This document shows, piece by piece, positions 22,269 to 45,164 of a DNA stretch of 64,000 nucleotides (within the stretch, counting starts at the first letter, position 1; every line of letters starts with the position of its first letter). The notes below the pieces were generated by a model. It searched no databases. It had not been told where the DNA came from and saw nothing but the letters and a program-made list of their open reading frames with translations. The position numbers were made by a program, and so were the translations under genes. Where the stretch lies: the IMG/VR virus record IMGVR_UViG_3300021963_000021, positions 124,001 through 188,000 of that record, one strand, 5' to 3'.

Positions 22269-22277
22269 GGATTAGAG

Positions 22278-23495: not shown

Positions 23496-23510
23496 TTAAG
23501 TATATCCTAC

Positions 23511-23546
23511 AATATCCTAGCATAAGTATCATGCTAGGATATTTTT
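23511..23546 (+). promoter_or_regulatory. 13-bp perfect hairpin covering the RBS of 23547, with late-promoter-like TAAGTA at its loop; may also act as a terminator
   Basis: AATATCCTAGCAT (23511-23523) / ATGCTAGGATATT (23531-23543); TAAGTA at 23523-23528; T run then ATG. Confidence 0.75.
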
Positions 23547-25572: not shown

Positions 25573-26143
25573 GATCTATGTTGATAAAAATTTGGGGACA
25601 GTTATAATGTTCTCAAACAGCGATCTGCCAGAAATGGATCATCCTGATTTTTTACCATTTACTGTTCCTGAGCAATATAGTGAACTATTTGATAGAATAA
25701 AAGAGGGTAAAGATTCTTTGAGCAGAATACGTGTAAACGTAAGCAGTAAAGAATTTAAAATTTATTCTTTAAATGATTTTAAAGACACTGACTATGAGTA
25801 TGGTAAATGGTTTAAATTACCTTGTTATAGAAGGAATCCTCCCGTCGAGGCAGATTTGATATTAACGATTATCAGTAAAAATTTTAAACCTTATCTATCT
25901 TTAAAGTTTGTCGGGGACCCTAAGATTTTAAAAGATCCCAAACGTCATTCTTTAAATTTCTATTTCACTAAACAAAATGATTTAAATTGTTTGTATGAAT
26001 CTTTCCATACAGACTTCGACAAACTAGACAAGAACAACGAAATCGTTTTTCCTATAGAGCGTATAGATCCTGATAAATTATTTCAAAATAATTTCAGTGT
26101 TTATTATAGAAAAATTTTTAAAACGGTATATTACGTATTATGA
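25559..26143 (+). CDS. Hypothetical protein
   Basis: 194-aa ORF overlapping both neighbours. Confidence 0.6.
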   Translation: MNIYKIYVDKNLGTVIMFSNSDLPEMDHPDFLPFTVPEQYSELFDRIKEGKDSLSRIRVNVSSKEFKIYSLNDFKDTDYEYGKWFKLPCYRRNPPVEADLILTIISKNFKPYLSLKFVGDPKILKDPKRHSLNFYFTKQNDLNCLYESFHTDFDKLDKNNEIVFPIERIDPDKLFQNNFSVYYRKIFKTVYYVL

Positions 26144-27042
26144 AACCATCAGATTTAGAAGTGATTTTTATCAGTTATGACGAGCCTAACGCAGATTTAA
26201 ATTATTCAGACTTATTAACTAAAGCACCATGGGCTAAAAGAATACACGGTGTTAAAGGCAGCGACAATGCGCATAAAGCTGCCGCAGCTGAATCATCTAC
26301 TGATTGGTTTGTTACAGTAGATGGTGACAACAAAGTAGATCCGAAGTTTTTTAACATTGAAATAGAAGAATTGCCAAATGTTAATGTATACGGATGGTGT
26401 GGTAAAAACAACATAAATGGTCTACGCTATGGCAATGGTGGTTTGAAAATCTGGAACAAACAATTTGTATTAGATATGAAGACACACGAGTCTGCTGAAG
26501 ATCCAAGAGCACAGGTTGATTTTTGCTGGGAAGCCGGATACATGAACTTTCCTACAGTGTTCAGTGAAACAATCATTAACTCAACTCCCTTCCAAGCATG
26601 GCGAGCAGGATTCCGTGAAGGTGTTAAGATGCTGTTGAAAGACGGACTTAAGATTGATAAAGCACGTCTTAAACAAGAAGTATATTGGCATAACATACAT
26701 AGACTTCGTATGTGGAGTTGCGTCGGGTCACATGTACCTAATGGAAATTATGCCATACTCGGTGCTAGGATGGGCAGCTGGATGGCATATTGTACTGATT
26801 GGGATCACATAAATGTTAGAGATTTTGATGTGTTAAAAGATCTCTATGAAAAGAATGTCACGCACGATGATATTGAGAATGACATAAAAGATCTAGGAAA
26901 AGAGTTACGAATTAACCTGGGGTTGAATTGGTCTTATTTTATACCCGAACAAAGTGAGTATGTTGTAGAGATGTATGAAGAATCTATAGCATTGGGACAG
27001 ACATATTTTAACAAGGCTCCGATATGGAAAAGTTCTTCTTAG
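26140..27042 (+). CDS. GT-A-fold glycosyltransferase-like protein
   Basis: IFISYDEPNA..VKGSDNAHKAAA..FVTVDGDN (DxD)..YGNGGLK..AWRAGFREGVK. Confidence 0.65.
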   Translation: MKPSDLEVIFISYDEPNADLNYSDLLTKAPWAKRIHGVKGSDNAHKAAAAESSTDWFVTVDGDNKVDPKFFNIEIEELPNVNVYGWCGKNNINGLRYGNGGLKIWNKQFVLDMKTHESAEDPRAQVDFCWEAGYMNFPTVFSETIINSTPFQAWRAGFREGVKMLLKDGLKIDKARLKQEVYWHNIHRLRMWSCVGSHVPNGNYAILGARMGSWMAYCTDWDHINVRDFDVLKDLYEKNVTHDDIENDIKDLGKELRINLGLNWSYFIPEQSEYVVEMYEESIALGQTYFNKAPIWKSSS

Positions 27043-27704
27043 CATTTGACGATCCAAATTCAAAAGAAAACTTTGATCGTGCTAGATCGATGATCCCTGA
27101 TCTACAGGAAGTTAACACAAAAATGTCTATAGTTGAATCACATAAACTGTGCGGGTCAATGTCGTTGACTAATCAATTTATGGTATTAGATGCTGATTCG
27201 TACTTGTTAGATGAATTCAATATGGCAGAACTTTATAACATCTGTAAAGACTCAGATTGGATTTACATATTTTCTGCTAGAAATCCCGTAAACGATTTAG
27301 AGTATGGTCACGGTGGTGTAAAGATATTTCAAAAAAAATATTTTAATAACAATGAAGTTATAGATTTTTCTACTAGCTTTTTAGGAAAGATCCGCACTGT
27401 TAAAAAAACACTAAACATACATAGATTTAATTCTAGCGCATTTCACGCATGGCGTACAGCATTTAGAGAATGTGTTAAGCTAAGTTCTTCCACTATTGTT
27501 AACAGAAATAAAATAGACGACGAATATAGATTGACAGTGTGGTGTGAAAAATTCAACGATGTTGAATACGCAGAATTTGTCAAACTAGGAGCGATACAGG
27601 GCAGAGACTTTGGTAATTCAAATAAAAATAATCCTGCTGAGCTTAAAAAGATAAATGATTTTATATGGTTAAACAGATCCTATGAACAAGTGGTACAACG
27701 ATAG
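27024..27704 (+). CDS. GT-A-fold glycosyltransferase-like protein (paralogue of 26140)
   Basis: FMVLDADS (DxD)..YGHGGVK..AWRTAFRECVK. Confidence 0.6.
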   Translation: MEKFFLAFDDPNSKENFDRARSMIPDLQEVNTKMSIVESHKLCGSMSLTNQFMVLDADSYLLDEFNMAELYNICKDSDWIYIFSARNPVNDLEYGHGGVKIFQKKYFNNNEVIDFSTSFLGKIRTVKKTLNIHRFNSSAFHAWRTAFRECVKLSSSTIVNRNKIDDEYRLTVWCEKFNDVEYAEFVKLGAIQGRDFGNSNKNNPAELKKINDFIWLNRSYEQVVQR

Positions 27705-29085
27705 ACTTGAATACAAAAAAGAATTAGACACCATTGGTCACGGATTTTGTTCGGCTAAATGGAGTCAAGTTACCATACACTTAGGTACGGGGCATAATCA
27801 CAGTTGTCATCATCCTAGGACACATTTTATTCCTATTGAAGAAATAGTCGAAGATCCAACAGCATTACACAATACAAAATTTAAAAAAGAAATACGTAGG
27901 CAGATGCTCAACGGTGAACGTCCAACGGAATGCGATTACTGTTGGAAAGTCGAAGATGCTGGCGAGCCTCTTAGCGACAGAGTATTAAAAAGTTATGAAC
28001 CGTGGAGCAGAGATTATTTTGACAAAATAATAAAAGCAGGATCGGAAGGTAATGTAGATCCTAGCTACTTAGAAGTTAGTTTTTCAAATGTTTGTAATTT
28101 TAAATGTTCTTATTGCTCTCCTGATGTTAGCAGTCAGTGGATGGAAGAAATTAAACAGCACGGACCTTACCCTACGTCTATACGATACAATAATATTGAT
28201 TGGATACAGAAGCAGGATAAGATGCCAATTCCTGAGCGTGAATACAATCCATATGTAGAAGCATTTTGGAAGTGGTGGCCGGACCTTTATAAAAATTTAC
28301 ATACATTCCGCATTACAGGCGGTGAACCATTATTAACTAAACACACATTTCGTGTATTAGATTATATAATTGAAAATCCTAACAAGAATCTAGAACTTAG
28401 CATTAACAGTAATTTCTGTGTACCTGATGATGTATTTGAAAAGTTTCTTTCGAAATTAGAAATAATACAATCAAAAAAATCAGTGAAGCATTTAGTTGTG
28501 TTTACTAGCTGTGAAGCAGCAGGGCCAAAAGCTGAATATATTAGACACGGATTGAATTATGCCAAATGGTATTCTAATTGTAATTTGTTTTTACAAAGAA
28601 TACCAAATGCTAAACTAGGTATTATGAGCACCTATAATGCGCTGTCAGTTACTAGCTATACTGATTTCTTAAAAGACATGTGGTTGTTAAATTATACGCA
28701 CAGCAAAAAGAAATGGTATCAATCAATCGCTAGCTTAGTGTCGACTGGTGATTTAGGTAAGCATCCATTGATATTAGATATTCCGTATCTTAATAACCCA
28801 CCGCATCAGACTGTGGGAATACTTACGCCCGACTACATACCTCGTATACAAGAATCTATTGATTACATGAACTCTAATAAAGAGTTCTATAAATCAGAAA
28901 CTCAAAAATTAGAAAGACTATTAAAAGTTTTTGAACCAAAAATTCTTGATGACAATCCTGGTAAAGCGCAGCACAGAAAAGATTTTGTTTCTTTTGTTGA
29001 CGAGCACGATAAGAGACGAGGAACGAACTTTTTAAGTACGTTCCCCGAAATGACAGAGTTTTATAACTTTTGTAAAACTTACTGA
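27682..29085 (+). CDS. Radical SAM protein with N-terminal Cys-rich (SPASM/twitch-like) segment
   Basis: CNFKCSYC (CxxxCxxC), ITGGEPLL; N-terminal CSAKW..SCHH..CDYCW. Confidence 0.85.
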   Translation: MNKWYNDRLEYKKELDTIGHGFCSAKWSQVTIHLGTGHNHSCHHPRTHFIPIEEIVEDPTALHNTKFKKEIRRQMLNGERPTECDYCWKVEDAGEPLSDRVLKSYEPWSRDYFDKIIKAGSEGNVDPSYLEVSFSNVCNFKCSYCSPDVSSQWMEEIKQHGPYPTSIRYNNIDWIQKQDKMPIPEREYNPYVEAFWKWWPDLYKNLHTFRITGGEPLLTKHTFRVLDYIIENPNKNLELSINSNFCVPDDVFEKFLSKLEIIQSKKSVKHLVVFTSCEAAGPKAEYIRHGLNYAKWYSNCNLFLQRIPNAKLGIMSTYNALSVTSYTDFLKDMWLLNYTHSKKKWYQSIASLVSTGDLGKHPLILDIPYLNNPPHQTVGILTPDYIPRIQESIDYMNSNKEFYKSETQKLERLLKVFEPKILDDNPGKAQHRKDFVSFVDEHDKRRGTNFLSTFPEMTEFYNFCKTY

Positions 29086-29747
29086 CTTACAAAATCGCCG
29101 GTCATTGGAAATACTGCGGCGATGACACAGGCACATTCTTTTGCTATTTGTTGATGTTCTAACTGTGTACCATTAGCTGAACGCAATTCGATAAAGTGAA
29201 TCCAACTACGCAATGTGCCATTCATGTATAACCGGCTTTCTGTTAGACCTTCTGGTAACACAGCACGAGCTTGTTCTTTAGCAATGCCACGCTCTATTGC
29301 TTCGGAGTAAGCTACGCTAGCCTGTTCAATGATCCATTTTTGCTTGGCATCCCACCATGCTTGTAACTCTGTATCATTTGTGATGATGCTGTTCTGACGA
29401 TTCTTGTTGTCTTGAAGTCTGGCTTCTCTTGTAACGAACGCCAAATCTTTAGTTGGGTCAGCATAGCGTTGACTGAACTCTTGGAAACTAAAACTTCTGT
29501 GTCGCAAGATTTGTCTAGCGATATCTCTTGTGGTTGTAATTTCACAACAGGCTGAGACCATTTCGAGTGGGCTCCAGTGTTTGTGTTTGACCAAGTATCG
29601 GATGAGTTTTTCTGATGTTTCGGTGTTAAGTTGGTTGGCTGGATTGCTGACACGGGCGCAATACGCAATGAGTTCTTGCGCATCTGAGATGCCCATATCT
29701 GCAAATTCCTGTGTTGGCTGTGAATAGGAAATAAGTCGTACATTCAT
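29079..29747 (-). CDS. thyX: FAD-dependent thymidylate synthase
   Basis: RHRSFSFQEFSQRY signature; HWSPLE; EQARAVLP. Confidence 0.95.
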   Translation of the reverse strand: MNVRLISYSQPTQEFADMGISDAQELIAYCARVSNPANQLNTETSEKLIRYLVKHKHWSPLEMVSACCEITTTRDIARQILRHRSFSFQEFSQRYADPTKDLAFVTREARLQDNKNRQNSIITNDTELQAWWDAKQKWIIEQASVAYSEAIERGIAKEQARAVLPEGLTESRLYMNGTLRSWIHFIELRSANGTQLEHQQIAKECACVIAAVFPMTGDFVSQ

Positions 29748-33614: not shown

Positions 33615-34045
33615 GAAACCTCAGACTTTCCTTTACTCAACGGAGTGACATTAATGAACCCTGCGTTTACACGCTCGGGCTCTGCTACTCCGTCATCGGC
33701 GAGCATGTTTCTAACAATATCACGGAACCAACGATCGACAATTTCTTCGTCAGCGTCGCCATCGAATCCGTAACCTTCTTGTTTTAATTGTAACACAAAT
33801 AATTCGTTCCAGTCAAGCTCAAAAAAACCGTTGCGTATATTATCCTTGTTAACATGAGTATCTAAAACGGATACCCAAGGTTCACCTTTTCTAGTAGCAC
33901 GTTCTTTTGGAGTCAGTTTAGCGAGTTCTTCTGCTTCTTTGGCTTTAAGTGCTTCTCCTTCGGCAACTTTCTTTTCTTGTTCTAATCTTGCTTTGTCTGC
34001 CTCTAATTTAGCAATACCTGTAATTTTTTTAAACCAATCTTTCAT
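33611..34045 (-). CDS. Hypothetical protein (likely start MKDWFK, TAATG-coupled to queE)
   Basis: Stop/start overlap at 34043-34047. Confidence 0.6.
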   Translation of the reverse strand: MKDWFKKITGIAKLEADKARLEQEKKVAEGEALKAKEAEELAKLTPKERATRKGEPWVSVLDTHVNKDNIRNGFFELDWNELFVLQLKQEGYGFDGDADEEIVDRWFRDIVRNMLADDGVAEPERVNAGFINVTPLSKGKSEVS

Positions 34046-34905
34046 TATGTACCCCACTCATTTTTAAATAACGGCACCTGTAAGCGGTCACTATAACGTA
34101 AACCATGTTTCATTGCCATAATAGCTACCGCTTTATTGTTTAATGCGTAAACACTTTCAACACCACCGACTGGCATTAGATAAACGTGTCCTTTAAATCC
34201 AGCGGCACGATATTCGCTTGCGGCTTTAAGCGCATAGTCGCGATCTTCTTCTGTGGCAATAACAAATTTCAAGTATGCTGTACCAACTTCTTCATACTCA
34301 CAAACAACCTCTGGAAGAATTGCTTCTTCCCACTTCTCACCACTACAAGGAAGTTTAGCACTGACACTGAATGTAACTTCTCTAGTGAAGTCTAAGTTAG
34401 GCATCTGCCACTGTAATAGATAGTCTTTAAATTCTGGACTTAGTTTTTGAGTACCATTTGTTTCAAAAGTAATTTCTTTCAATCCAGACATCTTAGGATT
34501 ATCTAGCAAGTCTGGATAAGCACGTTGCCAACCTAGCAATGGCTCGCCACCTGTAATTACGAGATGTTCGTCTAACCATTCATTATGTGGAAGGATTTCC
34601 ATAATTCGATCTGCTATAGCATCGCTTGTGAGCATTGGACTAAGGTCTTTGAATCTTGGATCCCAACTTGCGTAACTGTCACAGCCTGTACTAACAAGTG
34701 GAAGTTCTTCATATTTTGTAAATGGTTTTAAAGTATGTGCTAACGCAATGGTGTCAACTTCGTCACTTAGTTCACCACGTGGCATTCCGAAACCAGCACA
34801 TTTAAAGTTACAACCAAATGTACGTAAGAAAACAGAAGGCACACCCATATAGCGTCCTTCACCTTGTATGCTGTAAAACAGCTCTGCGATTTTGATTTTG
34901 CTCAT
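34045..34905 (-). CDS. queE: 7-carboxy-7-deazaguanine synthase (radical SAM)
   Basis: ELFYSIQGEGRYMGVPSVFLRTFGCN..C..CDS, VITGGEPLL, FETNGT, SDRLQ. Likely start ATG 34905. Confidence 0.88.
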   Translation of the reverse strand: MSKIKIAELFYSIQGEGRYMGVPSVFLRTFGCNFKCAGFGMPRGELSDEVDTIALAHTLKPFTKYEELPLVSTGCDSYASWDPRFKDLSPMLTSDAIADRIMEILPHNEWLDEHLVITGGEPLLGWQRAYPDLLDNPKMSGLKEITFETNGTQKLSPEFKDYLLQWQMPNLDFTREVTFSVSAKLPCSGEKWEEAILPEVVCEYEEVGTAYLKFVIATEEDRDYALKAASEYRAAGFKGHVYLMPVGGVESVYALNNKAVAIMAMKHGLRYSDRLQVPLFKNEWGT

Positions 34906-34911
34906 GTTTAT

Positions 34912-34941
34912 ATTATACACTCATTTCTTTAATTTTGTCAA
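34912..34941 (-). promoter_or_regulatory. Sigma70-type promoter TTGACA-18-TATAAT for queE
   Basis: Consensus hexamers at 34941-34936 and 34917-34912; ATG 6 nt downstream. Confidence 0.75.
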
Positions 34942-35509
34942 CTATACTTTTGAAAATAAATTCATTACCTTCTTTGGTATAATGATTAACATCACCACGG
35001 TTACTTGGCCAATACTCTGAAAAATCTAAATGATTCAATTCGTGACCAAAATGACTGCTGGCACTAGTATGGTCTAATGCTAGATATAGTGTTTGAACAT
35101 TTCTATCTATTTCACTGCGCATCAATCTATAGATATCTTCTTGATACTGTTCATCATAATGATGTTTAAACCAATTTAATGCTGTTACTAAACTTTCGTT
35201 TGATTTGTCTTGATTGTTTTCTAAATCATTAAAGATTAGATCACAGTTTTCGTGTAGCCCTTTTCTTTTTATAGGATGAGTGGGCGTGTGTACACGAAAG
35301 GGACTGGTATGACTAACAATCACTAGATTAAATTCTTTTGTGTTATTATTTTCTATTTGTTTTAAGATCTTATATTCACCAACACCTGCCTGCGCTACGT
35401 TTTTAACTGAATATTCTTTAGACAATAGATCTGCCCAACCAGGATACTCGCCGTTCCATTTGGCAGCAAAACTATCTCCGGCTAGCAGTATTTTTATTTT
35501 TTTAGCCAT
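34913..35509 (-). CDS. SGNH/GDSL-like hydrolase or acyltransferase
   Basis: LLAGDSFA, NVAQAGVG, terminal DVNHY. Confidence 0.65.
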   Translation of the reverse strand: MAKKIKILLAGDSFAAKWNGEYPGWADLLSKEYSVKNVAQAGVGEYKILKQIENNNTKEFNLVIVSHTSPFRVHTPTHPIKRKGLHENCDLIFNDLENNQDKSNESLVTALNWFKHHYDEQYQEDIYRLMRSEIDRNVQTLYLALDHTSASSHFGHELNHLDFSEYWPSNRGDVNHYTKEGNEFIFKSIVDKIKEMSV

Positions 35510-36309
35510 GGGATGAAACTTTCAGCTATCATGCGATGATAATCTTCGTTGTAATGTTCGTTGTCTGGAAGAAAGAATTTAGTATGATCGATAAACTTTT
35601 TACGAAAATAAGTTTCAACTGTTTGTTCGGAAATTTTAGTAGATTTTAATTTTGCGTAGTAATCTAATTTTTCCGGAAACTTAACACGATCAGTCATGTT
35701 AAACAGATACAGTTTACAGCCGTGTTCGTGGCACATAGTATCCATAACAAGTATATCTTTAAAAAAGTCTCTCTGTTCAAGATGTGTATTCAACTCAAAG
35801 AATAGTTTAACATCCATGTACGAATCTTTTCTAAGATCTGGTTTTATAAGACCGCTGGCATAATTAAAATTAATGTCTGCCATTCTTCCAAAATCTTCGT
35901 AAGTGGGTTTATTTAGAAGTTGGAATCTGTCATCTTTAAAAATCGTATCTTGGTATATGTCTACTAATCCGTGCTTGTTTTTATAAAATTCAGTAAAGTA
36001 ATCTGAACCAATAACATCAGCAGATAGTGTTTCATTGAATGCTAAGATAAAACGATTCCAGCTGGCTAGCAGTACAAACACTTCGTCGGTATCTGGATGT
36101 TTATCTAACATTGTTCTAAGCCAGTCTGTATATACTTTGTTTGCTGCTCCGGGAATAGCATACACTGACACTTGTTTGTTATTTTCTTTTGCGTAGAATT
36201 CTGCGTAGTTGTTGTCATTCCATAGGGAGTAACTACCAGGTCCCATCTTGCCTGGTTCTGTTATATAACCGCAGGTGTGACTATCGCCGAGAAATATTGC
36301 TCTACTCAT
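35494..36309 (-). CDS. SGNH/GDSL-like hydrolase or acyltransferase
   Basis: IFLGDSHT, AIPGAAN, terminal DNEHY. Confidence 0.65.
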   Translation of the reverse strand: MSRAIFLGDSHTCGYITEPGKMGPGSYSLWNDNNYAEFYAKENNKQVSVYAIPGAANKVYTDWLRTMLDKHPDTDEVFVLLASWNRFILAFNETLSADVIGSDYFTEFYKNKHGLVDIYQDTIFKDDRFQLLNKPTYEDFGRMADINFNYASGLIKPDLRKDSYMDVKLFFELNTHLEQRDFFKDILVMDTMCHEHGCKLYLFNMTDRVKFPEKLDYYAKLKSTKISEQTVETYFRKKFIDHTKFFLPDNEHYNEDYHRMIAESFIPWLKK

Positions 36310-36503: not shown

Positions 36504-36703
36504 TCTGGTACTTGTCTAAATCTAGTAATGAAGCTTTCTAAATAACAGCTATATTCTTTGTTGTTATCTGGATCTTCAGGATCAATAACTACATTTTCTT
36601 TTCTGTAATGTACCCAGGTGTGATCATGTATATCAATTACGTGTATCACACGAAACTTTTGACTAGTTGAACCTTCCCACAATGTACCTTCTTTAACGAT
36701 CAT
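36500..36703 (-). CDS. Hypothetical protein
   Basis: 67 aa, ATGA-coupled. Confidence 0.55.
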   Translation of the reverse strand: MIVKEGTLWEGSTSQKFRVIHVIDIHDHTWVHYRKENVVIDPEDPDNNKEYSCYLESFITRFRQVPE

Positions 36704-37092
36704 TTTTCGCCCTTTCGATAGTTACCTTTTCCTGGGATAGTGTTTCGAACACCGCCCACAGGATCTTCTACATCACCTTTGCGTCTTGGAATGAGATGTA
36801 CATGCGGATACATTACAGTCTGACCAGCAGCTTCACCCCAATTAAGACCAATATTAAATCCGTCCCATTCGCCAATGGCTACCATTTCTTTTCCGTGCTT
36901 GAAAGCATCGGCAAAGCAATCTTCAATAACTCCGTCGGCAGAGTATTGAGGAACGAAAAGAAGATGCCCGGGTGTACAAGGATATTTGTCCTCGAAAACC
37001 ACAACATGGAAGTCCTCCCGGATCTTTTCTGTCCATGGCGCTACGCCATTGGCCGCGGCATCTTCTAAAGTGTAATATTGTATCTTACTCAT
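36700..37092 (-). CDS. HIT-family nucleotide hydrolase
   Basis: DKYPCTPGHLLFVP..FNIGLNWGEAAGQTVMYPHVHLIPR. Confidence 0.9.
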   Translation of the reverse strand: MSKIQYYTLEDAAANGVAPWTEKIREDFHVVVFEDKYPCTPGHLLFVPQYSADGVIEDCFADAFKHGKEMVAIGEWDGFNIGLNWGEAAGQTVMYPHVHLIPRRKGDVEDPVGGVRNTIPGKGNYRKGEK

Positions 37093-37316
37093 CTTGAAAA
37101 GTCCTTGCGCTCTTGCGGTAGCGCATCTTCTTTAACAACAAACTCTCGTCCTAGCATACTGCCGACGTAGACTTTGGTGTTTTCTTTATATACCATTCGT
37201 ATCTTAACAGTTTGTAACGCTACTTCTAGGAAAGCCTTTGGCTTGTGTCCTAGTATATGAGCATCGAGGTCTTTGCCGTTATCAGTACAACGTATTTTTA
37301 TTTTCGAATCAATCAT
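37089..37316 (-). CDS. Hypothetical protein
   Basis: 75 aa, ATGA-coupled. Confidence 0.55.
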   Translation of the reverse strand: MIDSKIKIRCTDNGKDLDAHILGHKPKAFLEVALQTVKIRMVYKENTKVYVGSMLGREFVVKEDALPQERKDFSR

Positions 37317-37810
37317 TTAGTCCACCAATCTTCGTATGGAAAATCAATCCATATATTACGTTCTGCTTTATTAATTTCTTCCCCGGTGAAATCCATTTTA
37401 ACTTTACAGCTCGATGCTAGGTTATCAAACATCACAGCAAATTTCACATTGTTATTCCACACTTCGTTCCAGCGTGTGTGATCGGGCAAACAATTCGCTT
37501 GCCAGTCGTCCATGATCCAATTAAGTGTAGCACCTGTATCGTTGATATCGTCGGCAATTAAGATATTCTTTTCTTCGAACGCATCTTCTGCCATCCAGAG
37601 ATTGCTTTCGCAATCGTCACCATCTCTTAACTGTACTTTAATTGTTTGGCAAGGAATATTAAAATAGTGGCTAATCATTACAGCTGGCAGCAGCCCGCCT
37701 CGGGTTATTCCAACCACATAGTCGGGTTTCCAATCAGATAAACTAATATCTCTACAGATCTTATTGATCAACGCTTGGTACTGTAACCAGCTTACGTTAT
37801 ATTTTTCCAC
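37313..37810 (-). CDS. Type I phosphoribosyltransferase (xanthine/guanine PRT-like)
   Basis: VVGITRGGLLPA, ILIADDINDTGAT PRPP loop, WIDFPYE. Confidence 0.88.
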   Translation of the reverse strand: MEKYNVSWLQYQALINKICRDISLSDWKPDYVVGITRGGLLPAVMISHYFNIPCQTIKVQLRDGDDCESNLWMAEDAFEEKNILIADDINDTGATLNWIMDDWQANCLPDHTRWNEVWNNNVKFAVMFDNLASSCKVKMDFTGEEINKAERNIWIDFPYEDWWTK

Positions 37811-38270
37811 TCTCTAATTTCCTTACGGCAATATATTCCTCATGTTGAATCCATTTGTTATTGACTAGGAAACCCCAATCACGTTTATGTGGACCGGGCA
37901 TAAACAATGTCCAGGCTGTTACACCTTCTTTTAATTCAATGCGATGATAGCTTGTTGGCTTACAAATACGAAAATGCCCAGGGCCTCTCCAGTGGCGTAT
38001 CTCGCCAATCTTTTGGCCAATACTATTAAACTGTGGAACCCATTCATAGTACCCGCCTTTCAAAATTAGTGTAGCATATGGCCAAGGATGATCATGTACA
38101 TCGTCGGGATCGCCTTTTAAAAACTTGTGTAGAAACACATTAAAAGGAAACCAAGAACGATCTTTTAGAAAAAGGTAATACCTTTCTAAGTAAGGCTCAT
38201 TACTTTGCCTATCCATAATAATACGCTTGCGGCCAATGCTATCAAGCCAATTTAGAAAACGGTAAAACAT
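37797..38270 (-). CDS. Cupin-fold protein
   Basis: HDHPW..ILKGGYYE..YHRI..AWTLF metal-binding cupin pattern. Confidence 0.65.
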   Translation of the reverse strand: MFYRFLNWLDSIGRKRIIMDRQSNEPYLERYYLFLKDRSWFPFNVFLHKFLKGDPDDVHDHPWPYATLILKGGYYEWVPQFNSIGQKIGEIRHWRGPGHFRICKPTSYHRIELKEGVTAWTLFMPGPHKRDWGFLVNNKWIQHEEYIAVRKLESGKI

Positions 38271-38277
38271 TATATCC

Positions 38278-38511
38278 TCATTTTTTAGGTTTTGTTGCTT
38301 CTGGTGGTGTGTCAGCGGTTAATGGTCTTCCTTGATCATCATAATGAATATATGTGTCAATGTATCGTACCATACGAACCGGAACCCAATATGCCCTTAG
38401 TAATTTGTTAATACCAATAGCTGTAACGACAATTAATAGGACAGTTAGACAGCCAACAAATGTACCGCCAAACATTGACAGACCTGTAAGTATTGCTGAG
38501 CATTCATTCAT
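38278..38511 (-). CDS. Small membrane protein
   Basis: One long hydrophobic segment; SD AAGGA. Confidence 0.55.
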   Translation of the reverse strand: MNECSAILTGLSMFGGTFVGCLTVLLIVVTAIGINKLLRAYWVPVRMVRYIDTYIHYDDQGRPLTADTPPEATKPKK

Positions 38512-38524
38512 ATATTTCCTTTAG

Positions 38525-39349
38525 TTAGCGTGGAGCAAATTCTTGTTGAAGTTTAATATTATCCATGAACTCTTTTTTAGTTCCTGGATCATCTTTAAAC
38601 GCACCTTTTAATACTGTAGTCTGCGTTAAAGAACTGTGTGCCATAATACCGCGATTCTCACAGCAACCATGTGTTGCCTGTACATAGACTGCTACATTTT
38701 CTGAGTCAGTGGCTTTGCTAATCTCGCGGGCAATGTCGTTACAAAGTTCCTCCTGGAGAGTACCACGTCTTGCACACCACTGTGCGATGCGTGTGTACTT
38801 TGAGAGTCCAATGAGTTTTTGTGCGGCAATAATACCAATATAAGCAACGCCAGTAACGGGTTGATGATGATGGCTACACATACTGCGAAGCTCACTGCGA
38901 ACCACAAGCATACCTTCGTAGCGGTCCTCCGAGTCATTTGGGAAAGCGGTTGCGTCTGGTGCTGGGTCATACCTACCTGCCATTATTTCATTAAAGTACA
39001 TCTTAGCAAGCCTGCGGGCTGTGCCTTGACTGTTAGGATCATTTTCACGGTCAATTAGTAGCGTATCTAACACACGTTCAAACGCTTCTGTTGCTTCGTC
39101 GATAAGTTTTGCTTTATCTTCTTCAGTGACATAGTCACTGATATTGTCACCGGCCCAGAAGCGTTTTTTATCACGCTTCAATTTCGCACGAATAGCATCA
39201 CCTAAATAGCCTTCTGAATATCCTTTGTCGGACATCATTTCACCTGCTTTAACGTACACTTGCTTTTCTAATGGTACGTATTTTTCTTCAACGAACTTTT
39301 TGTCTAACGGTTCGTTGAGAACAGGATCTGGTGTAAATTCTTTTGTCAA
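38525..39349 (-). CDS. folE: GTP cyclohydrolase I
   Basis: SMCSHHHQP, IGLSKYTRI, LQEEL, HGCCENRG; TTG start with SD GGAG. Confidence 0.93.
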   Translation of the reverse strand: MTKEFTPDPVLNEPLDKKFVEEKYVPLEKQVYVKAGEMMSDKGYSEGYLGDAIRAKLKRDKKRFWAGDNISDYVTEEDKAKLIDEATEAFERVLDTLLIDRENDPNSQGTARRLAKMYFNEIMAGRYDPAPDATAFPNDSEDRYEGMLVVRSELRSMCSHHHQPVTGVAYIGIIAAQKLIGLSKYTRIAQWCARRGTLQEELCNDIAREISKATDSENVAVYVQATHGCCENRGIMAHSSLTQTTVLKGAFKDDPGTKKEFMDNIKLQQEFAPR

Positions 39350-39389
39350 TTTATTGTTCTCCGAGTTAATGTCGTGGATGACATATATG

Positions 39390-40454
39390 TTATTTTAAAT
39401 TCTTTAGAAGATTTTCGCAACTGAAGAAGTTGTTTTTTAATTCTTCTACCTGTTTATTTAGGCTAGGTAAGAATTTTTCATAATTTTCCATGTACTGGAT
39501 TATCTTATGACACACTTCTTTTCTATGAACTTCATAGGATTCGAATGATTCTGTCCATTCGCTAGGATATTTGAATGGATCAAATGCCATTTCACTGTAG
39601 CTGAGTCTATCAGGAACCATAGGAATAGCATCTACAACTGCCCCTTCGTACCAACTGATACCTAGGGTTTCTTGTAGATTAGCACTGAATACTAGTTTAG
39701 CTTCACCTAGCATATTATGATATTCGTTCTTGGTCAACGGATATTCTTGGCATACTTTAAATTCGTATTGTGGAAGATGCTTTTTTAAATCAAGAAATAT
39801 ATCTAGCTGCTTTTCTGGAGCAATACGATGTGGGAATAGAATTAAGTTTTTCTTTTCCATTCCTTTATACATCATAAGAGCATTAGTCATATACTCCATT
39901 GGCCAGCCTGTGCGTATAACCTTACCGTCAAAGTCTGCGCCTGAAATAACTTTAGTTCCAAATAGATTTTCAAAGAACATCTTAATATGGAAGTTTGTGG
40001 CAAAGTAGTTGTGGTCAAACGCTTCGTAAAAACTTTTCTCAGCGTGTCTAACCCAAGGCTTGTTGCCAACAAGACGTCCTAGGAAGTCTTGAGGATCATA
40101 ACTGCCAGCATGCCACAGGCCATGAGTGACTACAGGAATATCCAGCAATTCACTCATGTACTTTAAGTTTATGATACCAGGGTGCCAAGCATCAGTAAAA
40201 ATAAAATGATCCCCAGGCTTAATTGCTCCGGCGCAAAATAAACGACCAATCTGCTCAACCTGACTAGACTTGTATATATTAGTCCCGCCAAAATTAAGAA
40301 AGGCCCCAGGAGTAGTGGCACTAGGAATATCCGTAGGGCCAGAGATAACTTGAACATTGTGTCCTGCCTTTCGTAGAAGTTCAGGTACATGAGTCTTCCA
40401 TTGACCCGTGTACCTGGTTTCAACCGCTTCTAGATCAACGAGAAAAACGGTCAT
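39390..40454 (-). CDS. GT-B fold glycosyltransferase (likely start MTVFLV at 40454)
   Basis: ILFPHRIAPEKQ, VFSANLQETLGISWYEGAVVDAIPMVPDRLSYSEM (GT-B E-x7-E-like region). Confidence 0.75.
   Translation of the reverse strand: MTVFLVDLEAVETRYTGQWKTHVPELLRKAGHNVQVISGPTDIPSATTPGAFLNFGGTNIYKSSQVEQIGRLFCAGAIKPGDHFIFTDAWHPGIINLKYMSELLDIPVVTHGLWHAGSYDPQDFLGRLVGNKPWVRHAEKSFYEAFDHNYFATNFHIKMFFENLFGTKVISGADFDGKVIRTGWPMEYMTNALMMYKGMEKKNLILFPHRIAPEKQLDIFLDLKKHLPQYEFKVCQEYPLTKNEYHNMLGEAKLVFSANLQETLGISWYEGAVVDAIPMVPDRLSYSEMAFDPFKYPSEWTESFESYEVHRKEVCHKIIQYMENYEKFLPSLNKQVEELKNNFFSCENLLKNLK
39392..39420 (-). promoter_or_regulatory. Possible sigma70 promoter TTGCGA-17-TAAAAT for folE
   Basis: Near-consensus hexamers with a 17-nt spacer. 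Confidence 0.45.
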
Positions 40455-40704
40455 TGTTATATCTCGGTTTATTACCTTGGTAAGGTTTGCGTTCACCGTT
40501 GTTTCGATCTACCCAAGGACGCTTTGGGCGTTTACTATACAGATAGTTCTGATAGTTTTTTGAATCCTTGCGGTACAAATCCGCAGGGTTGAAATCGCAG
40601 AGTTCAATTCTGCAGTAGTCCAAATACGCTTCAAGATCTTCAAAGATCTTGACAACGTCAGGACGGTTAGTGAAGTAGGAATAGTCCTTGTAGTTCTTAG
40701 ACAT
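40435..40704 (-). CDS. Hypothetical protein
   Basis: 89 aa with SD GAGG and a basic tail. Confidence 0.6.
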   Translation of the reverse strand: MSKNYKDYSYFTNRPDVVKIFEDLEAYLDYCRIELCDFNPADLYRKDSKNYQNYLYSKRPKRPWVDRNNGERKPYQGNKPRYNNDRFSR

Positions 40705-40713
40705 TTTAGCCTC

Positions 40714-41109
40714 TTAGTATTTGATAAACGAACCATTTTCTCCGTCTTCGGAGATCTCAATCCAAATCTCGCGATCTGGATACTTTAGCGAAATAATGTT
40801 GAACAAATCGTCCGACATCATTTCACAACTCTTGTAGTCAAGGCTTAGAATGGAACCTTGACCATTATACAGCGACTCGAGCCATCGTTTGAACTGGATG
40901 AACTCGATGTCCCTGTCATTATGGAGCACACTGATCCACACCCTGAAATGAAAGATGTGGCGATGAGGGTGACCCAAAAACGATACATCATATTCATCTC
41001 CTGTAGCTAAGTTGGGATCTGTAAGAGCCGCAGGATATTTATGAATACCTTCCTTTTGAAAGGTAACCCAGATCATTTTGTTAGGTCTAATATCTTGTTT
41101 AATGATCAT
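40714..41109 (-). CDS. QueD-paralogous T-fold protein, DpdL-like (putative CDG decarboxylase)
   Basis: GIHKYP..LGHPHRHIFHF..DIEFIQFK..SCE..ISEDGENG. Matches the LxxxHRHxF signature I recall for DpdL (from memory, not searched). Confidence 0.65.
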   Translation of the reverse strand: MIIKQDIRPNKMIWVTFQKEGIHKYPAALTDPNLATGDEYDVSFLGHPHRHIFHFRVWISVLHNDRDIEFIQFKRWLESLYNGQGSILSLDYKSCEMMSDDLFNIISLKYPDREIWIEISEDGENGSFIKY

Positions 41110-41408
41110 GCCTTTAGTCCTTCCATAGTAATGATCTTACCGATCTCGTCACCTAGATCTTTATCGTCTGTGATAATATAAAGACCATTATTGCTGGTGT
41201 CACGCTTCATGTCGTATTTGCGTGTTTCGATGATAGTTCCGCCGTTTGCTCGGAATACCTTAAGGGTAAATCCGTTTGCGTCAATGGACCTTTCACCGGT
41301 AGAAAGCACTGCGGCTGTTCCCATTTTTATTCCTTCATCTTGGTATTTGTGGCTGTTATCCCACATATCGCGGGTCTTTTTATACAGCCATTTATCAAAC
41401 CATTTCAT
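41106..41408 (-). CDS. Hypothetical protein
   Basis: 100 aa, ATGA-coupled. Confidence 0.6.
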   Translation of the reverse strand: MKWFDKWLYKKTRDMWDNSHKYQDEGIKMGTAAVLSTGERSIDANGFTLKVFRANGGTIIETRKYDMKRDTSNNGLYIITDDKDLGDEIGKIITMEGLKA

Positions 41409-41947
41409 TTAATAATCTCATCGTTAGTGTAAGCACTCCACGGTGTGAACTTACTGCGGTCTTTTAAATCGTGTAGGCTATGACACCACACGCCGGGATT
41501 GGTTGCTTTAAAATCTTTGTCATCGATTTTAAGCATTGTATTGTAATTCCATAGTTTGATATATGGGATAGGTATACGGATTTGCGGAATAAACATCTCG
41601 TAGTCGTTTAAGCAGCCGTCATTGAACTCTTCTACTTGATTTAGTGGAATATCTAGACTACACCAATACCCTTGATCGAGAAAATGTGTAATCATATCTT
41701 CCCATGCCTTGTGCTCATCATATCCTGTAGGATTGAAACTATGATTAGCACCAAAGAAGATATGTTTAATATGTTTGCTAGTGTCGAGCAAACAATTCAT
41801 ATCACCAAGAATGTGGTCAATGACTTGTTCATTTTGAACACCAGTTACAAACAATGTACGCATACCAAACGTGGGAGTATTCTCGACTTCGTTACCGATG
41901 AAAAAATTCACATCTTCTAATGTGCCAGTGGAATAATCACGCTTCAT
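41405..41947 (-). CDS. Hypothetical enzyme-like protein within the deazaguanine locus
   Basis: 180 aa with motif-like blocks GNEVENTP, HIFFGANHSF, KIDDKDFKATNPGVWCH. Confidence 0.6.
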   Translation of the reverse strand: MKRDYSTGTLEDVNFFIGNEVENTPTFGMRTLFVTGVQNEQVIDHILGDMNCLLDTSKHIKHIFFGANHSFNPTGYDEHKAWEDMITHFLDQGYWCSLDIPLNQVEEFNDGCLNDYEMFIPQIRIPIPYIKLWNYNTMLKIDDKDFKATNPGVWCHSLHDLKDRSKFTPWSAYTNDEIIK

Positions 41948-42114
41948 TGTTTAAACCAGTTTCTAATTGACTTCATTAAATTATAGTATCTTGCTTTGTA
42001 GTTGTCAACCAGGATATCATCAATCATTGGGCGACGATGTGGGCAGCGACCTTGTCTCCAGTCGCAACCTGCGTGAATTTCTTCACCGCAAGTTTCGCAT
42101 TTTCTAGCTACCAT
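41944..42114 (-). CDS. 56-aa Cys-rich (zinc-finger-like) protein missing from the ORF track
   Basis: Hand translation: MVARKCETCGEEIHAGCDWRQGRCPHRRPMIDDILVDNYKARYYNLMKSIRNWFKQ. Fills the gap and overlaps both neighbours. Confidence 0.65.
   Translation of the reverse strand: MVARKCETCGEEIHAGCDWRQGRCPHRRPMIDDILVDNYKARYYNLMKSIRNWFKQ
41980..42008 (-). promoter_or_regulatory. Perfect sigma70 promoter TTGACA-17-TATAAT
   Basis: Hexamers at 42008-42003 and 41985-41980, upstream of the 41947 / DpdL-like / GT genes. Confidence 0.8.
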
Positions 42115-42338
42115 GTGTTTACGTCAGTGATATCAACGGTGGTGTCGATGTCCTTGTCGGCATCGTTGAATAGGTTGAACTTAACAACAACGGCAGGACC
42201 AATTCCGCTGGTGTGACTTTCTTCGAGAGTGAACCACTCTACTTCTTTGAAGTGAGCAGATATTTTAGCAAGTTTTTCAATTTGTCCTTTGTTAAGAGCA
42301 AACTGTGTTGGTACGTAGTCTTTATCTTTCTTCGTCAT
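42108..42338 (-). CDS. Hypothetical protein
   Basis: 76-aa ORF. Confidence 0.55.
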   Translation of the reverse strand: MTKKDKDYVPTQFALNKGQIEKLAKISAHFKEVEWFTLEESHTSGIGPAVVVKFNLFNDADKDIDTTVDITDVNTW

Positions 42339-42531
42339 AATCTATGCTTTCGTGATCATGTTCCCACTGTAGTCTAGTAAGTCTAGCAAGTTCGTCCTTA
42401 TAAAGCAACTTCTTTTTCTTTAATTCGGACAAATTCTCATCGGTAAATTTACCATTTCTTTCTAACGCAGAAATCTGTTCGTCAATTAATCTGTGTGTTT
42501 CGGTTAACGTTTTGATTCGAGATTCGTACAT
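42322..42531 (-). CDS. DUF465/YdcH-like small coiled-coil protein
   Basis: L..H..ID.QI..LE....LSELKKKKLLYKDEL pattern. Confidence 0.65.
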   Translation of the reverse strand: MYESRIKTLTETHRLIDEQISALERNGKFTDENLSELKKKKLLYKDELARLTRLQWEHDHESIDYDEER

Positions 42532-42546
42532 TTTGGCCTCCGATAA

Positions 42547-44079
42547 TCAATTGGCTGTTTGCTCTAGAAATTCGTGTTCTAATTCTTCGAGCATATCTTC
42601 GTCTAACACAGGCATTGCTGACACTTGTGACACAGACTTGTCTAATACTACTTCATCTGATTCAAAGTGTTTGTTAAACGTGTTGTTGGCGTTTCCACCA
42701 CGTAGACGCATACCCATCATTTTGTTCAGCATAGGTCTAGCATCTTCAATCATCTGCATTGGAGTTTCGCTGGTAAACAATTCTTCAACGAAGTTATTGA
42801 AGTACAGGATGTTACGAGGTACCCATTCAGAGTATTCATCGCTCTTATCCATGTCTTTGAGATTCTTCCATTGACGCCAGTTAGGACTTACTTTGGCAGT
42901 TTCAATATCCATTAAATTGTTAGCACGTTGTACAGCAACGATGTGACAATATGTATTATGTGCCATCATTAGCGCATAACCAAAGCTGTCCCAAGAAGTT
43001 TTTCCTTCTTTGCCGATTTTGTTTAACATTCCCGGCTTGTACCAGCAGATGTCTCCGATGTTAAGGCGCCTGCCAATTTCTGATTCAAACGGGAAGGGGA
43101 TGTTAAAAGCCTGGCTAATTGCTTTGTTGTCTGGGGCCTTGTCCATGATGACTGACCAGCGTTTGTTGGTGTGCTGGGCATTTGTGTAGACAAGCCCGTG
43201 GGCTGTAGCAATGAAGGGTGATGCGCAATCAAAAGATATGGTAAAGTTTTCATTCACGTGCTTCCTTACTTGGCGTTGGATTAAAGTTAAGTAACAAGAC
43301 CAATCTAACTGTGCTGTACCCAAGAAGTGCATCCAGTTACGATCGTCTAACAGTTTCTCATCACGCAGGATAATGAGACGTTTTAGTGCGACTTCCATAT
43401 CACACATATTCTTACCGCCCATTGCCCACCCTTCTGTAGGCAAGTGTTTAACTGCTTCGTACCAAGCCTGTGCTGTTTCCCAGTCACTGCCTTGTAGAAC
43501 GTTAAGGAATTTAGTTTGACCTAAGCGATTACGTATAAAGTAATCATTGTTGTGAAGTGTTTTATCTAAACAGTCTTGAAAACTCTTTAATCCTGTCTTT
43601 GGACTATGGATATGATCGCTAGCCCATGTCGGGACGTCTAATAACATTGACCAATCAGCAGTTAATTCTAGCCAGTTAAGGATGCTGTCACGAGTTTTAT
43701 TGGCAGCAGCACCTTCAAAGTTCATCCAATCAAACTTAAGAACACCTTTACCGATCTGATAGCCGCCGGAGTCGCCTACAATAAGTGTGTTGTTACGATC
43801 TCTACTTTGAATCATAGCATCTTGAATCATTGTCTTTTCAAGATCTAATTGTGCGTGGCCTGCTGAGTAAAGACCATATTTGTAAGTAAAGTATCCTTGC
43901 TCAGGATTAAGGAAGTTCATTCCTTCAATGCCGCGATCAAACCCTTGCGGAATACGATCGTTAGGAACAAACTCGCTGAATCTTTGTTTGCTTACATATG
44001 TTGAATAAAAACAACTAATCGCAGGCAAATAGACTGCGTAGTCTTTCTGTAGGGGTGTTAAATTAACTGGTGGTCTCAT
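42547..44079 (-). CDS. TGT-fold deazaguanine transglycosylase-like protein (divergent DpdA, DpdA3-like)
   Basis: TGT motifs in order: GDSGGYQ, MLLDVP, LNVLQG, GWAMGG, MHFLG, SFDCASP, LMMAHN. No CxCxxC zinc site of tRNA TGTs. Lies near folE/queE. Confidence 0.75.
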   Translation of the reverse strand: MRPPVNLTPLQKDYAVYLPAISCFYSTYVSKQRFSEFVPNDRIPQGFDRGIEGMNFLNPEQGYFTYKYGLYSAGHAQLDLEKTMIQDAMIQSRDRNNTLIVGDSGGYQIGKGVLKFDWMNFEGAAANKTRDSILNWLELTADWSMLLDVPTWASDHIHSPKTGLKSFQDCLDKTLHNNDYFIRNRLGQTKFLNVLQGSDWETAQAWYEAVKHLPTEGWAMGGKNMCDMEVALKRLIILRDEKLLDDRNWMHFLGTAQLDWSCYLTLIQRQVRKHVNENFTISFDCASPFIATAHGLVYTNAQHTNKRWSVIMDKAPDNKAISQAFNIPFPFESEIGRRLNIGDICWYKPGMLNKIGKEGKTSWDSFGYALMMAHNTYCHIVAVQRANNLMDIETAKVSPNWRQWKNLKDMDKSDEYSEWVPRNILYFNNFVEELFTSETPMQMIEDARPMLNKMMGMRLRGGNANNTFNKHFESDEVVLDKSVSQVSAMPVLDEDMLEELEHEFLEQTAN

Positions 44080-44428
44080 AATCTCTCGCTAGTTTTGCTG
44101 TAATGTTTAAATGTTGTCTTGCCTGTTCTAGGTTGTCTAATGCTATTTTAACAGCCTTATTCTCATTTGCCAAGCTCTGCCACATCTTTTCTTCGTCACG
44201 TTTCTTACGTGCCCATTGTACTATATCTAGTACATCTTGATCTAGGCCTACAGTGGCATAGCTGGTACTCATACTAATCCAACTACTACCATCGAACACC
44301 TGAATGTCACTGCCCCAAACACGCATCATGCCTGTTACGGGGTTATTGGTATTTTGATTAACATAAGGTACGCTAGTGTTACCACCAGATACTGTTACGC
44401 CGCTAACGCCTTGTAGACCTTTGATCAT
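44063..44428 (-). CDS. Hypothetical protein
   Basis: 121-aa ORF. Confidence 0.6.
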   Translation of the reverse strand: MIKGLQGVSGVTVSGGNTSVPYVNQNTNNPVTGMMRVWGSDIQVFDGSSWISMSTSYATVGLDQDVLDIVQWARKKRDEEKMWQSLANENKAVKIALDNLEQARQHLNITAKLARDYETTS

Positions 44429-44429
44429 A

Positions 44430-45164
44430 TTACGCCTGTGCTGGAATAATGTACTTGTAAACTGCTACACCGCTGTCAAGAGTGATTTGAATAGCACCTT
44501 CGTTTGACAAAGACATCTTTGTGTTGTTTACATCAGCAATCTTTAAAATGCTTAAGATTGGCATCACTGGCCAAGTCCAGCCACGATCTAGTTTACCTGC
44601 TACATTTTGTGCGAATACAAATTCGCCACCGTGTGTTGACAAGTCACCAAATGTAAACTTTAGATTTCCACCTTCTGTCTTAGCAAGGAATGTTGGATGT
44701 TCGTTGTGAGCACCTGCTTGGAAGTTAAAACGTGTAACAGAAGCAACGCTTGGCTCTAGTTCAACGTCCCACTTAACACCACGGAATTTCACAGACTTCA
44801 TCTTTTCGTTGATGACTTCTTGATTCATAAAACGATAGTCGTTTTTAAAGTCGCCGTCTTTGTTTTCAAAGTGAATGCCAACTGGAATAGTTTCTCCGTT
44901 GCGTTCTGCTGTAGTGATACTGATTTTAGCATCATCTTTGTATTCGTTGCCATCGAGCAAATACTTTAGTTTATTAAGCTGAGGCATACCAAATGTACCA
45001 ATCATGTCTGGATATGGCTGGTATGTAGTAGCTTCCATAATAACAGAACGGTCTTCAGCCATTGAAAAGAATGTAGTTGACTCTTCTGTTCCTGTAATTT
45101 TAACTGTAGTCAAGAACCCTAGGTTCTGTGTATGACTAACGATGTCTTGTAAAATATCTTTCAT
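44430..45164 (-). CDS. Putative DNA sliding clamp (gp45/PCNA-like)
   Basis: 244 aa, alternating beta/alpha pattern, C-terminal YKYIIPAQ; directly downstream of DNA polymerase. Confidence 0.55.
   Translation of the reverse strand: MKDILQDIVSHTQNLGFLTTVKITGTEESTTFFSMAEDRSVIMEATTYQPYPDMIGTFGMPQLNKLKYLLDGNEYKDDAKISITTAERNGETIPVGIHFENKDGDFKNDYRFMNQEVINEKMKSVKFRGVKWDVELEPSVASVTRFNFQAGAHNEHPTFLAKTEGGNLKFTFGDLSTHGGEFVFAQNVAGKLDRGWTWPVMPILSILKIADVNNTKMSLSNEGAIQITLDSGVAVYKYIIPAQA

Follow-up and report, generated by a model that had tools for sequence, protein, structure and literature searches.

Among the described systems closest to the locus studied here is the 2′-deoxy-7-deazaguanine (dDG) pathway of Cellulophaga phage phiST, whose DNA contains plain dDG (Cui et al. 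2023, PMC10516641). This pathway comprises FolE, QueD, QueE and a DpdL protein with the motif LxxxHRHxF, lacks QueC, and includes a divergent DpdA with the tRNA-guanine transglycosylase (TGT) fold; the gene cluster lies next to replication genes. All these features recur in the jumbo phage that carries the subject of this study, a glycosyltransferase (GT) gene in a 64,000-nucleotide stretch of DNA (hereafter, the window), which covers bases 124001-188000 of the viral record IMGVR_UViG_3300021963_000021, a sequence of 363,943 bp rated 100% complete. However, phiST has no homologue of the window GT, and its DpdA, DpdA3, consists of 259 amino acids, whereas the members of the DpdA clade linked to the GT have 416-540.

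Among the phage enzymes that glycosylate DNA, the alpha- and beta-glucosyltransferases of T4 (AGT and BGT) resemble the window GT in being GT-B enzymes, and they add sugar from the host pool of uridine diphosphate-sugar to an already modified DNA base. However, they act on 5-hydroxymethylcytosine (hmC), and the T4 genes are unlinked to the base-synthesis genes. To our knowledge, glycosylated DNA bases have so far been only pyrimidines (hmC, 5-hydroxymethyluracil (hmU) and 5-hydroxycytosine), and the deazaguanines in DNA have so far carried only small C7 groups. The vertebrate queuosine glycosyltransferases QTMAN (GTDC1) and QTGAL transfer a sugar onto a 7-deazaguanine nucleoside already installed by a TGT-family enzyme, although they modify tRNA, at the cyclopentenediol hydroxyl of queuosine (bioRxiv 10.64898/2026.06.28.735034; PMC12518689). 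Similarly, HuiG of huimycin biosynthesis is a GT that acts on a free 7-deazapurine, and its gene lies beside FolE/QueD/QueE-type genes, but it comes from an actinomycete gene cluster for a secondary metabolite in which no transglycosylase is encoded, and what it makes does not enter nucleic acid (bioRxiv 10.64898/2026.04.15.718813); it is likened here by function and not by sequence. Homology of the window GT to QTMAN/GTDC1 was also considered and found to be unsupported: QTMAN was absent from the top 30 Swiss-Prot AlphaFold matches, and a search of the complete phage genome for the QTMAN_N domain (PF12038) gave nothing at E ≤ 1. The analogy is a functional one only.

We found that the GT subfamily is almost never located away from deazaguanine genes, and that its tightest partner is a DpdA-like transglycosylase, not DpdL or FolE. 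Based on these comparisons, the most likely predicted function of the GT is the transfer of a sugar onto a 7-deazaguanine that ends up in DNA. The new element is the comparative linkage, which suggests that the Dpd-type DNA modification pathway has been extended by a dedicated GT. No report linking a GT to DpdA or to DNA deazaguanines was found in the searchable literature, the coverage of which is incomplete, so this is an absence of evidence only.

Fold, family and donor site of the glycosyltransferase

In the list of open reading frames (ORFs), the longest frame of the gene is 39390-40496 on the minus strand, with a GTG start. Translation from the ATG at 40454 yields a protein of 354 amino acids, the N-terminus of which aligns with its homologues from residue 1-3, and the shorter coordinates proposed in an earlier note on this DNA, 39390-40454, are right for this reason. 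When the single sequence was searched against Pfam, PHROGs and the PDB sequences, no GT family and nothing meaningful in the PDB was returned. The assignment to GT-B in the earlier note was therefore an unverified call, and it was a family profile and a structural model that revealed the family and bore the call out.

Among 1.84 billion cluster representatives, 1107 related clusters were found at the 50% identity level, and metagenomes held more than 8000 clusters at the 90% identity level, each approximately 80% identical to the window GT. The family alignment contained 61 full-length members with 26-56% identity. The AlphaFold2 model built from this alignment (predicted local distance difference test (pLDDT), 95.7; predicted template modelling score, 0.92) shows the two-domain GT-B fold, with two Rossmann-like alpha/beta domains and the active site in the cleft between them. 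A Foldseek search of the PDB with this model gave 439 matches at E ≤ 0.001, with glycogen synthase, BshA, MshA, GlgM and PimA at the top. The family profile matched the PDB GT4 chain 8xsg (E 9e-5), and the E-x7-E motif of the family aligned to that of the solved GT4 chains 8xsg and 2f9f. The earlier note had pointed to T4 AGT and BGT; neither ranked among the best 50 matches when the PDB was searched with Foldseek, when VIA was used for re-ranking, or when viral structures (BFVD) were searched.

The motifs R-x4-K and E-x7-E, which mark donor binding in retaining GT4/GT5 enzymes, are both strongly conserved in the family. H115, R210, K215, E262 and E270 are retained in 58-61 of the 61 sequences, with E270 present in all 61 and E262, R210 and K215 each in 58. 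We take R210 and K215, which are five residues apart, to hold the donor diphosphate, by analogy with MshA and glycogen synthase and not by residue-level superposition. The Pfam model PF00534 (Glycos_transf_1) matched 47 of the 61 homologues at E ≤ 1 (best, 3e-8), and the window GT scored 12.8 bits, below the gathering cut-off of 26.4; judged by these scores, it is a divergent branch and not a canonical Glycos_transf_1 member. It also differs from the retaining GT4 enzymes BshA, MshA and sucrose-phosphate synthase, to which it is 9-12% identical, in having its own conserved motifs in the N-terminal acceptor domain (E9, R14-Y15, W19, TDAW and WHAGSYDPxDxLG). From the alignment and the model, we conclude that the GT is a divergent, retaining-type GT-B enzyme that is predicted to be catalytically competent.

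Linkage to deazaguanine genes and to one DpdA clade

The GT gene of the window lies between a DpdL-like gene and folE, as the earlier note had stated. The DpdL-like protein carries LGHPHRHIF, which fits the published signature LxxxHRHxF that defines DpdL (PMC10516641) and is kept in distant homologues, and it is 33% identical to the founding DpdL, CGPG_00067 of phiST. The window QueE shares 50% identity with the QueE annotated in Synechococcus phage BUCT-ZZ01 and 30% with the one annotated in Xanthomonas phage BUDD. QueD is encoded elsewhere in the same genome (G000:214652-215041), and no QueC was found in this genome. In the DpdA-like protein, which has no match to the Pfam TGT model, the motif GDSGGYQ is present and DSGGxQ is invariant; hhalign related it to the DpdA family of Acidovorax phage ACP17, BUDD, Burkholderia phage BCSR5 and BUCT-ZZ01 with a probability of 96.3%, and the top 50 PDB matches to its model (pLDDT 77.6) were all TGTs, at E values of about 3e-8. 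With FolE, QueE, QueD, DpdL and a DpdA-like protein present, the genome therefore contains the full DpdL-type 7-deazaguanine pathway (Cui et al.), with the GT in its midst.

The same setting recurs in isolated phages. A tblastn search of these with the GT matched 23 records, and inspection of one record per phage group identified six GT-bearing lineages with hosts that span phyla: Sinorhizobium phage Phosso, the Pseudomonas phage PA5oct group, ACP17, BUDD/X1, BUCT-ZZ01 and BCSR5. In these six phages, the GT sits among FolE, QueD, QueE, DpdL and DpdA-like genes, and it usually adjoins DpdL or DpdA, with the stop codon of one gene often overlapping the start codon of the next. Such an overlap joins the GT to the DpdA gene in PA5oct, ACP17 and the metagenome locus L091, and in ACP17 the GT is the middle one of three consecutive genes, between dpdL and dpdA. 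The gap between the GT and DpdA genes is 2 kb in the window and about 170 kb in Phosso. A megablast search of isolated phages with 20 kb of the window gave no match. Six distant metagenomic representatives of the GT were also looked up. DpdL was adjacent in all three of those with 27-32% identity to the GT (L091, L093 and L095). Among the three with 31-35% identity (L097, L098 and L099), L097 carries a second GT4, a phosphoribosyltransferase and a NUDIX gene, with no DpdL within its 7 kb, and L099 is too short to judge. A further 80 viral-contig loci, which were drawn from a 12-sequence alignment, are close relatives of the window locus and were not counted as independent evidence for this reason.

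A scan of one genome per prokaryotic species yielded 45 GT loci, of which the 32 flanked by 3 kb or more on each side were counted. A DpdA-like gene occurred within 3 kb of the GT at 29 of these 32 loci (30 within 8 kb), DpdL at 18, FolE at 6 and QueD at 2, and some deazaguanine gene was near the GT at 31. One of the two loci without a DpdA-like gene within 8 kb carries DpdL, FolE, QueD and QueE, and the other is a match to a fragment of 45 residues. Together with the six phage lineages, these counts bear out the membership of the GT in the deazaguanine pathway that the earlier note had proposed; homologues do not mostly occur without folE, queE or dpdA.

Absences follow the same line. DpdL was found in 28 phage records, and those lacking the GT include phiST, Rhizobium phage RHph_I1_18 and Aeromonas phage Ahp1. 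No GT was detected when these three whole genomes were searched with a profile, and the same profile found the GT in four positive controls. The profiles of two large DpdA-like families matched every GT-positive genome tested and none of the three GT-negative genomes. From this pattern of co-occurrence, it follows that the GT is most tightly tied to one clade of DNA transglycosylase, with DpdL a frequent third member.

The GT/DpdA-like pair was also found in cultured Alphaproteobacteria (Pelagibacterium, Ochrobactrum, Devosia, Azospirillum, Aurantimonas, Methylobacterium, Magnetospirillum, Shimia, Sulfitobacter and Thalassobius; contigs L110-L137 and L140), where its surroundings resemble mobile islands. 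Besides integrase or resolvase genes, the islands encode a HEPN protein or a nuclease of the CoiA-like or OLD-family type, together with a MASE1 histidine kinase and a LuxR-type response regulator. A small island protein weakly matches the YhhQ/Vut_1 family of queuosine-precursor transporters (E 3.4e-5, below threshold). DpdL and QueD are sometimes present, and many islands hold the GT and the DpdA-like gene with no pterin-forming enzyme nearby. The islands resemble the bacterial Dpd system (DpdA/DpdB/DpdC, preQ0/ADG) in combining a TGT-family writer with nuclease-type genes on a mobile island, but differ from it in their DpdA clade, in the GT and, often, in the YhhQ-like protein, histidine kinase and response regulator; the GT-island ORFs scanned included neither DpdB nor DpdC. 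Their gene content suggests that the islands may be a chromosomal DNA-marking system, possibly a deazaguanine-based modification or restriction system of Alphaproteobacteria that has not been described.

A second GT4-type gene occurs in the GT/DpdA cluster of BUCT-ZZ01 (L086:5001-6344), of L097 (845-1849) and of the Shimia/Sulfitobacter-type islands (L131:12275-13471). This is as expected if the clusters perform real glycan chemistry, and it hints at a disaccharide or at alternative sugars.

A proposed modification of virion DNA and its alternatives

In the pathway that we propose, FolE, QueD and QueE would make 7-carboxy-7-deazaguanine (CDG) from GTP, and DpdL would decarboxylate CDG to 7-deazaguanine, a step proposed previously (PMC10516641). 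The DpdA-like enzyme would exchange guanine in the phage DNA for the deazapurine, and the GT would move a sugar from a host-supplied nucleoside diphosphate (NDP)-sugar onto the deazapurine. The sugar may be added on DNA after insertion, or on the free base, which this DpdA clade would then insert; both routes are compatible with the steady pairing of the GT with an enlarged DpdA clade of its own kind, and the free-base route is favoured because the nearest solved structures have small-molecule acceptors. The resulting glycosylated 7-deazaguanine in the virion DNA would shield it against host nucleases. We see the balance as even on whether the GT and the large DpdA-like DNA-guanine transglycosylase indeed form such a two-enzyme module.

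Two published observations fit this proposal. When dpdL and dpdA of ACP17 were expressed in Escherichia coli, no dDG was formed, which led the authors to suspect that an enzyme was missing (PMC10516641). The GT is a concrete candidate for this "other unknown enzyme", because its gene lies between dpdL and dpdA in ACP17, and its absence would explain why the two genes were inactive in E. coli. The DNA of PA5oct resists several restriction enzymes, and an uncharacterised modified G was inferred from this resistance (PMC12191111); the GT provides a candidate for the enzyme behind it. If the proposal is true, the product would be the first purine analogue to carry a sugar in DNA and a new class of hypermodification, which would bear on restriction, CRISPR and glycosylase-based defences and on sequencing chemistry. 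The prediction is testable at once because the family occurs in cultured, tractable phages (PA5oct, ACP17, Phosso and BUDD).

Several points weigh against a sugar on a DNA deazaguanine. The base 7-deazaguanine itself has no hydroxyl, and we know of no precedent in DNA for any of the candidate acceptor atoms, which are N2, the C7 carboxyl and a further-modified side chain. Among the matches listed, the nearest solved structures (sucrose-phosphate synthase, BshA, MshA, GlgM and OtsA) have small-molecule acceptors and not DNA. The GT family is acidic, with a median isoelectric point (pI) of 5.7, and no DNA-binding feature was identified in it. The phage genome contains no sugar-1-phosphate nucleotidyltransferase (PF00483). 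Finally, roughly one third of the bacterial loci lack DpdL, which rules out a strict dependence of the acceptor on the DpdL product. The pI itself was rejected as a proxy for DNA binding, since it does not discriminate: the DpdA-like protein and the DNA polymerase are acidic too.

The small acceptors of these structures, many of them anionic (malate, inositol phosphate, sugar phosphates and ergothioneine), would also suit a GT that glycosylates a soluble intermediate or by-product that never enters DNA, such as a pterin or a free deazapurine, for storage, detoxification or pathway pull. The product of FolE is a pterin, and DpdL has the T-fold, which binds pterins or purines (PMC10516641). HuiG N-glycosylates a free 7-deazapurine (bioRxiv 10.64898/2026.04.15.718813), and cyanobacterial biopterin glucoside is a corresponding case for pterins. 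Tetrahydrobiopterin glucosyltransferases (BGluT) do appear among the PDB matches of the GT (9v0l at rank 34 and 5zes at rank 47, with template modelling scores of about 0.5-0.57), but dozens of other GT4 enzymes match at least as well. Moreover, the steadiest neighbour of the GT is the homologue of a DNA transglycosylase (29 of the 32 bacterial loci, versus 6 for FolE and 2 for QueD), and many islands pair the two genes without a nearby pterin-forming enzyme. We consider a soluble product to be unlikely on these grounds. The strict co-occurrence with one DpdA clade and the frequent stop/start overlap (PA5oct, ACP17 and L091) are also what would be expected if the GT-fold protein were an accessory subunit of that clade, as DpdB is for bacterial DpdA, with no sugar on the final base or with the NDP-sugar serving only in regulation, and DpdA3-type enzymes are inactive alone in E. 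coli (PMC10516641). However, a purely structural partner would not need the donor-site catalytic motifs, all of which are strongly conserved, and the distances between the two genes in the window and in Phosso weigh against such a role. The prediction of a complex of the GT, residues 1-450 of the DpdA-like protein and DpdL gave a score of 0.00; this lends the subunit no support, but it is no answer and constitutes evidence neither for nor against binding. An accessory subunit thus appears quite improbable to us.

It is very improbable that the GT lies in the cluster by chance and has an unrelated acceptor (for example, hmC/hmU DNA, a protein or a component of the host envelope). GT4 acceptors are very diverse, and Xanthomonas phage PhiXhv-15 has a distant homologue of the GT (L088, 7800-8903; 26% identity) beside GlmS and an LmbE-type deacetylase, not beside deazaguanine genes, a setting that resembles the BshA/BshB logic. 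However, the linkage recurs in phages of Proteobacteria and Cyanobacteria and in islands of otherwise different content, and even PhiXhv-15 encodes a DpdA-like ORF about 94 kb from the GT homologue (record positions 12047-12490). In addition, no hydroxymethylase of the thymidylate-synthase type was seen among the window ORFs scanned, which agrees with the earlier note; the ThyX that it mentioned is encoded at 29079-29747.

Glycosylation of a 7-deazaguanine destined for DNA could also be read more broadly, with the GT and the large DpdA clade as an unrecognised DNA-writing module that serves as a shield in phages (the abundant aquatic jumbo phages, PA5oct-like, ACP17-like and others) and as a self-mark in the alphaproteobacterial islands; we hold this wider reading to be plausible but somewhat doubtful. 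The specific chemistry put forward in the earlier note, in which the sugar is attached to the CDG carboxyl as an ester or to a hydroxyl made by the neighbouring cupin, is unsupported. Because the clusters of PA5oct, ACP17, Phosso and BUDD contain no match to the cupin, it cannot supply a general acceptor hydroxyl, although it may still act in this clade. From that earlier reading as a whole, the place of the GT in the pathway stood, and the likeness to AGT/BGT and general hydroxylation by the cupin did not.

Gene organization and other features of the window

The GT gene belongs to a run of closely spaced or overlapping minus-strand genes that extends from the 180-amino-acid (aa) ORF to FolE, and its start is overlapped by 20 nt by the end of the upstream 89-aa ORF (Table 1). 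The perfect sigma70-type promoter described in the earlier note was confirmed as the sole 12/12 match within 37000-45000 (8 kb scanned). Weaker promoter-like sites were no more frequent than in shuffled sequence, and therefore only the 12/12 promoter is notable. A terminator-like hairpin at 38481-38465 (minus strand) follows the last gene of the run, and it was given little weight because such sites were not enriched. The promoter falls within the 3′-terminal part of a small frame, 41944-42114 (minus strand), which reads MVARKCETCGEEIHAGCDWRQGRCPH... and may encode a zinc-ribbon-like peptide.

Table 1. Positions of the glycosyltransferase gene, its neighbours and the promoter in the window
Feature	Coordinates	Strand	Basis or remark
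QueE (radical-SAM 7-carboxy-7-deazaguanine synthase)	34045-34920	-	weak Radical_SAM/Fer4_12 Pfam matches
Purine-type phosphoribosyltransferase	37313-37810	-	PF00156, E 6.4e-14
Metal-binding cupin, HDHPW...H..E motif	37797-38270	-	phrog_4786, E 6.5e-36
FolE (GTP cyclohydrolase I), first step of the pathway	38525-39349	-	PF01227, E 6.1e-40; phrog_2197
GT-B (GT4-like, retaining-type) glycosyltransferase, 354 aa	39390-40454	-	subject of the analysis
Basic ORF, 89 aa, pI 9.3, between DpdL and GT	40435-40704	-	no Pfam or PHROG match
DpdL (QueD-like T-fold; proposed 7-carboxy-7-deazaguanine decarboxylase), 131 aa	40714-41109	-	motif; phiST homology
ORF of 100 aa, same gene string	41106-41408	-	present in 45/80 related loci
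Acidic ORF, 180 aa, first gene after the promoter	41405-41947	-	recurs with GT elsewhere
Exact sigma70-type consensus promoter, TTGACA-17-TATAAT	42008-41980	-	33 nt upstream of the 180-aa ORF
DpdA-like DNA-guanine transglycosylase (TGT fold), 510 aa	42547-44079	-	motif, profile, model

The smaller genes of the run also recur with the GT. The 89-aa ORF is present in 79 of the 80 closely related viral loci and in the related contigs L101, L103, L104 and L107. A homologue of the 180-aa ORF lies two genes upstream of the GT in ACP17, and members of its family lie directly upstream of, and overlap, the GT in L098 and occur in L101, L103, L104, L106 and L108. The 180-aa protein could be assigned to no family; in a protein-atlas search, its neighbours were FkbM-type methyltransferases with scores below 0.8, which are uninformative and serve as a lead only.

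The cupin, which is labelled "cysteine dioxygenase" in PHROGs, occurs in 73 of the 80 close relatives, beside the GT or FolE, and its motif is invariant in the alignment. It is a clade-specific neighbour outside the universal module and a plausible metal enzyme. In the metagenome locus L093, the GT is followed by a different, PMI/FdtA-like cupin and an FkbM methyltransferase.

The phosphoribosyltransferase recurs in the deazaguanine clusters of PA5oct and BUCT-ZZ01 (where it is annotated as a xanthine-guanine phosphoribosyltransferase) and beside the GT in L097, and it is also seen in L101-L106. It could return the exchanged-out guanine to GMP/GTP for FolE or, by analogy with TubE in tubercidin biosynthesis, could take part in the synthesis of a deazapurine nucleotide. 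Between QueE and this gene lie two weak SGNH/GDSL-like ORFs and a HIT-family nucleotide hydrolase/transferase (34913-36309 and 36700-37092, minus strand), and the HIT gene is retained in the related contigs L103, L104 and L106.

The late GT-A block that the earlier note had set apart from the GT was not recovered: the plus-strand ORFs in 20484-29085 contain no GT-A/GT2 domain by Pfam, and the sole match to PF00535 in the genome is outside the window (G000:16798-17022). In the window, the ORF at 27682-29085 (plus strand) encodes a second radical-SAM protein, and a giant open frame of more than 3600 codons (1-10875, plus strand) runs off the left end. A full-length double AAA+ chaperone of the ClpB/Hsp104 type (AAA_2, E 1e-55; Clp_N; ClpB_D2-small) is encoded at 57035-59377 on the minus strand.

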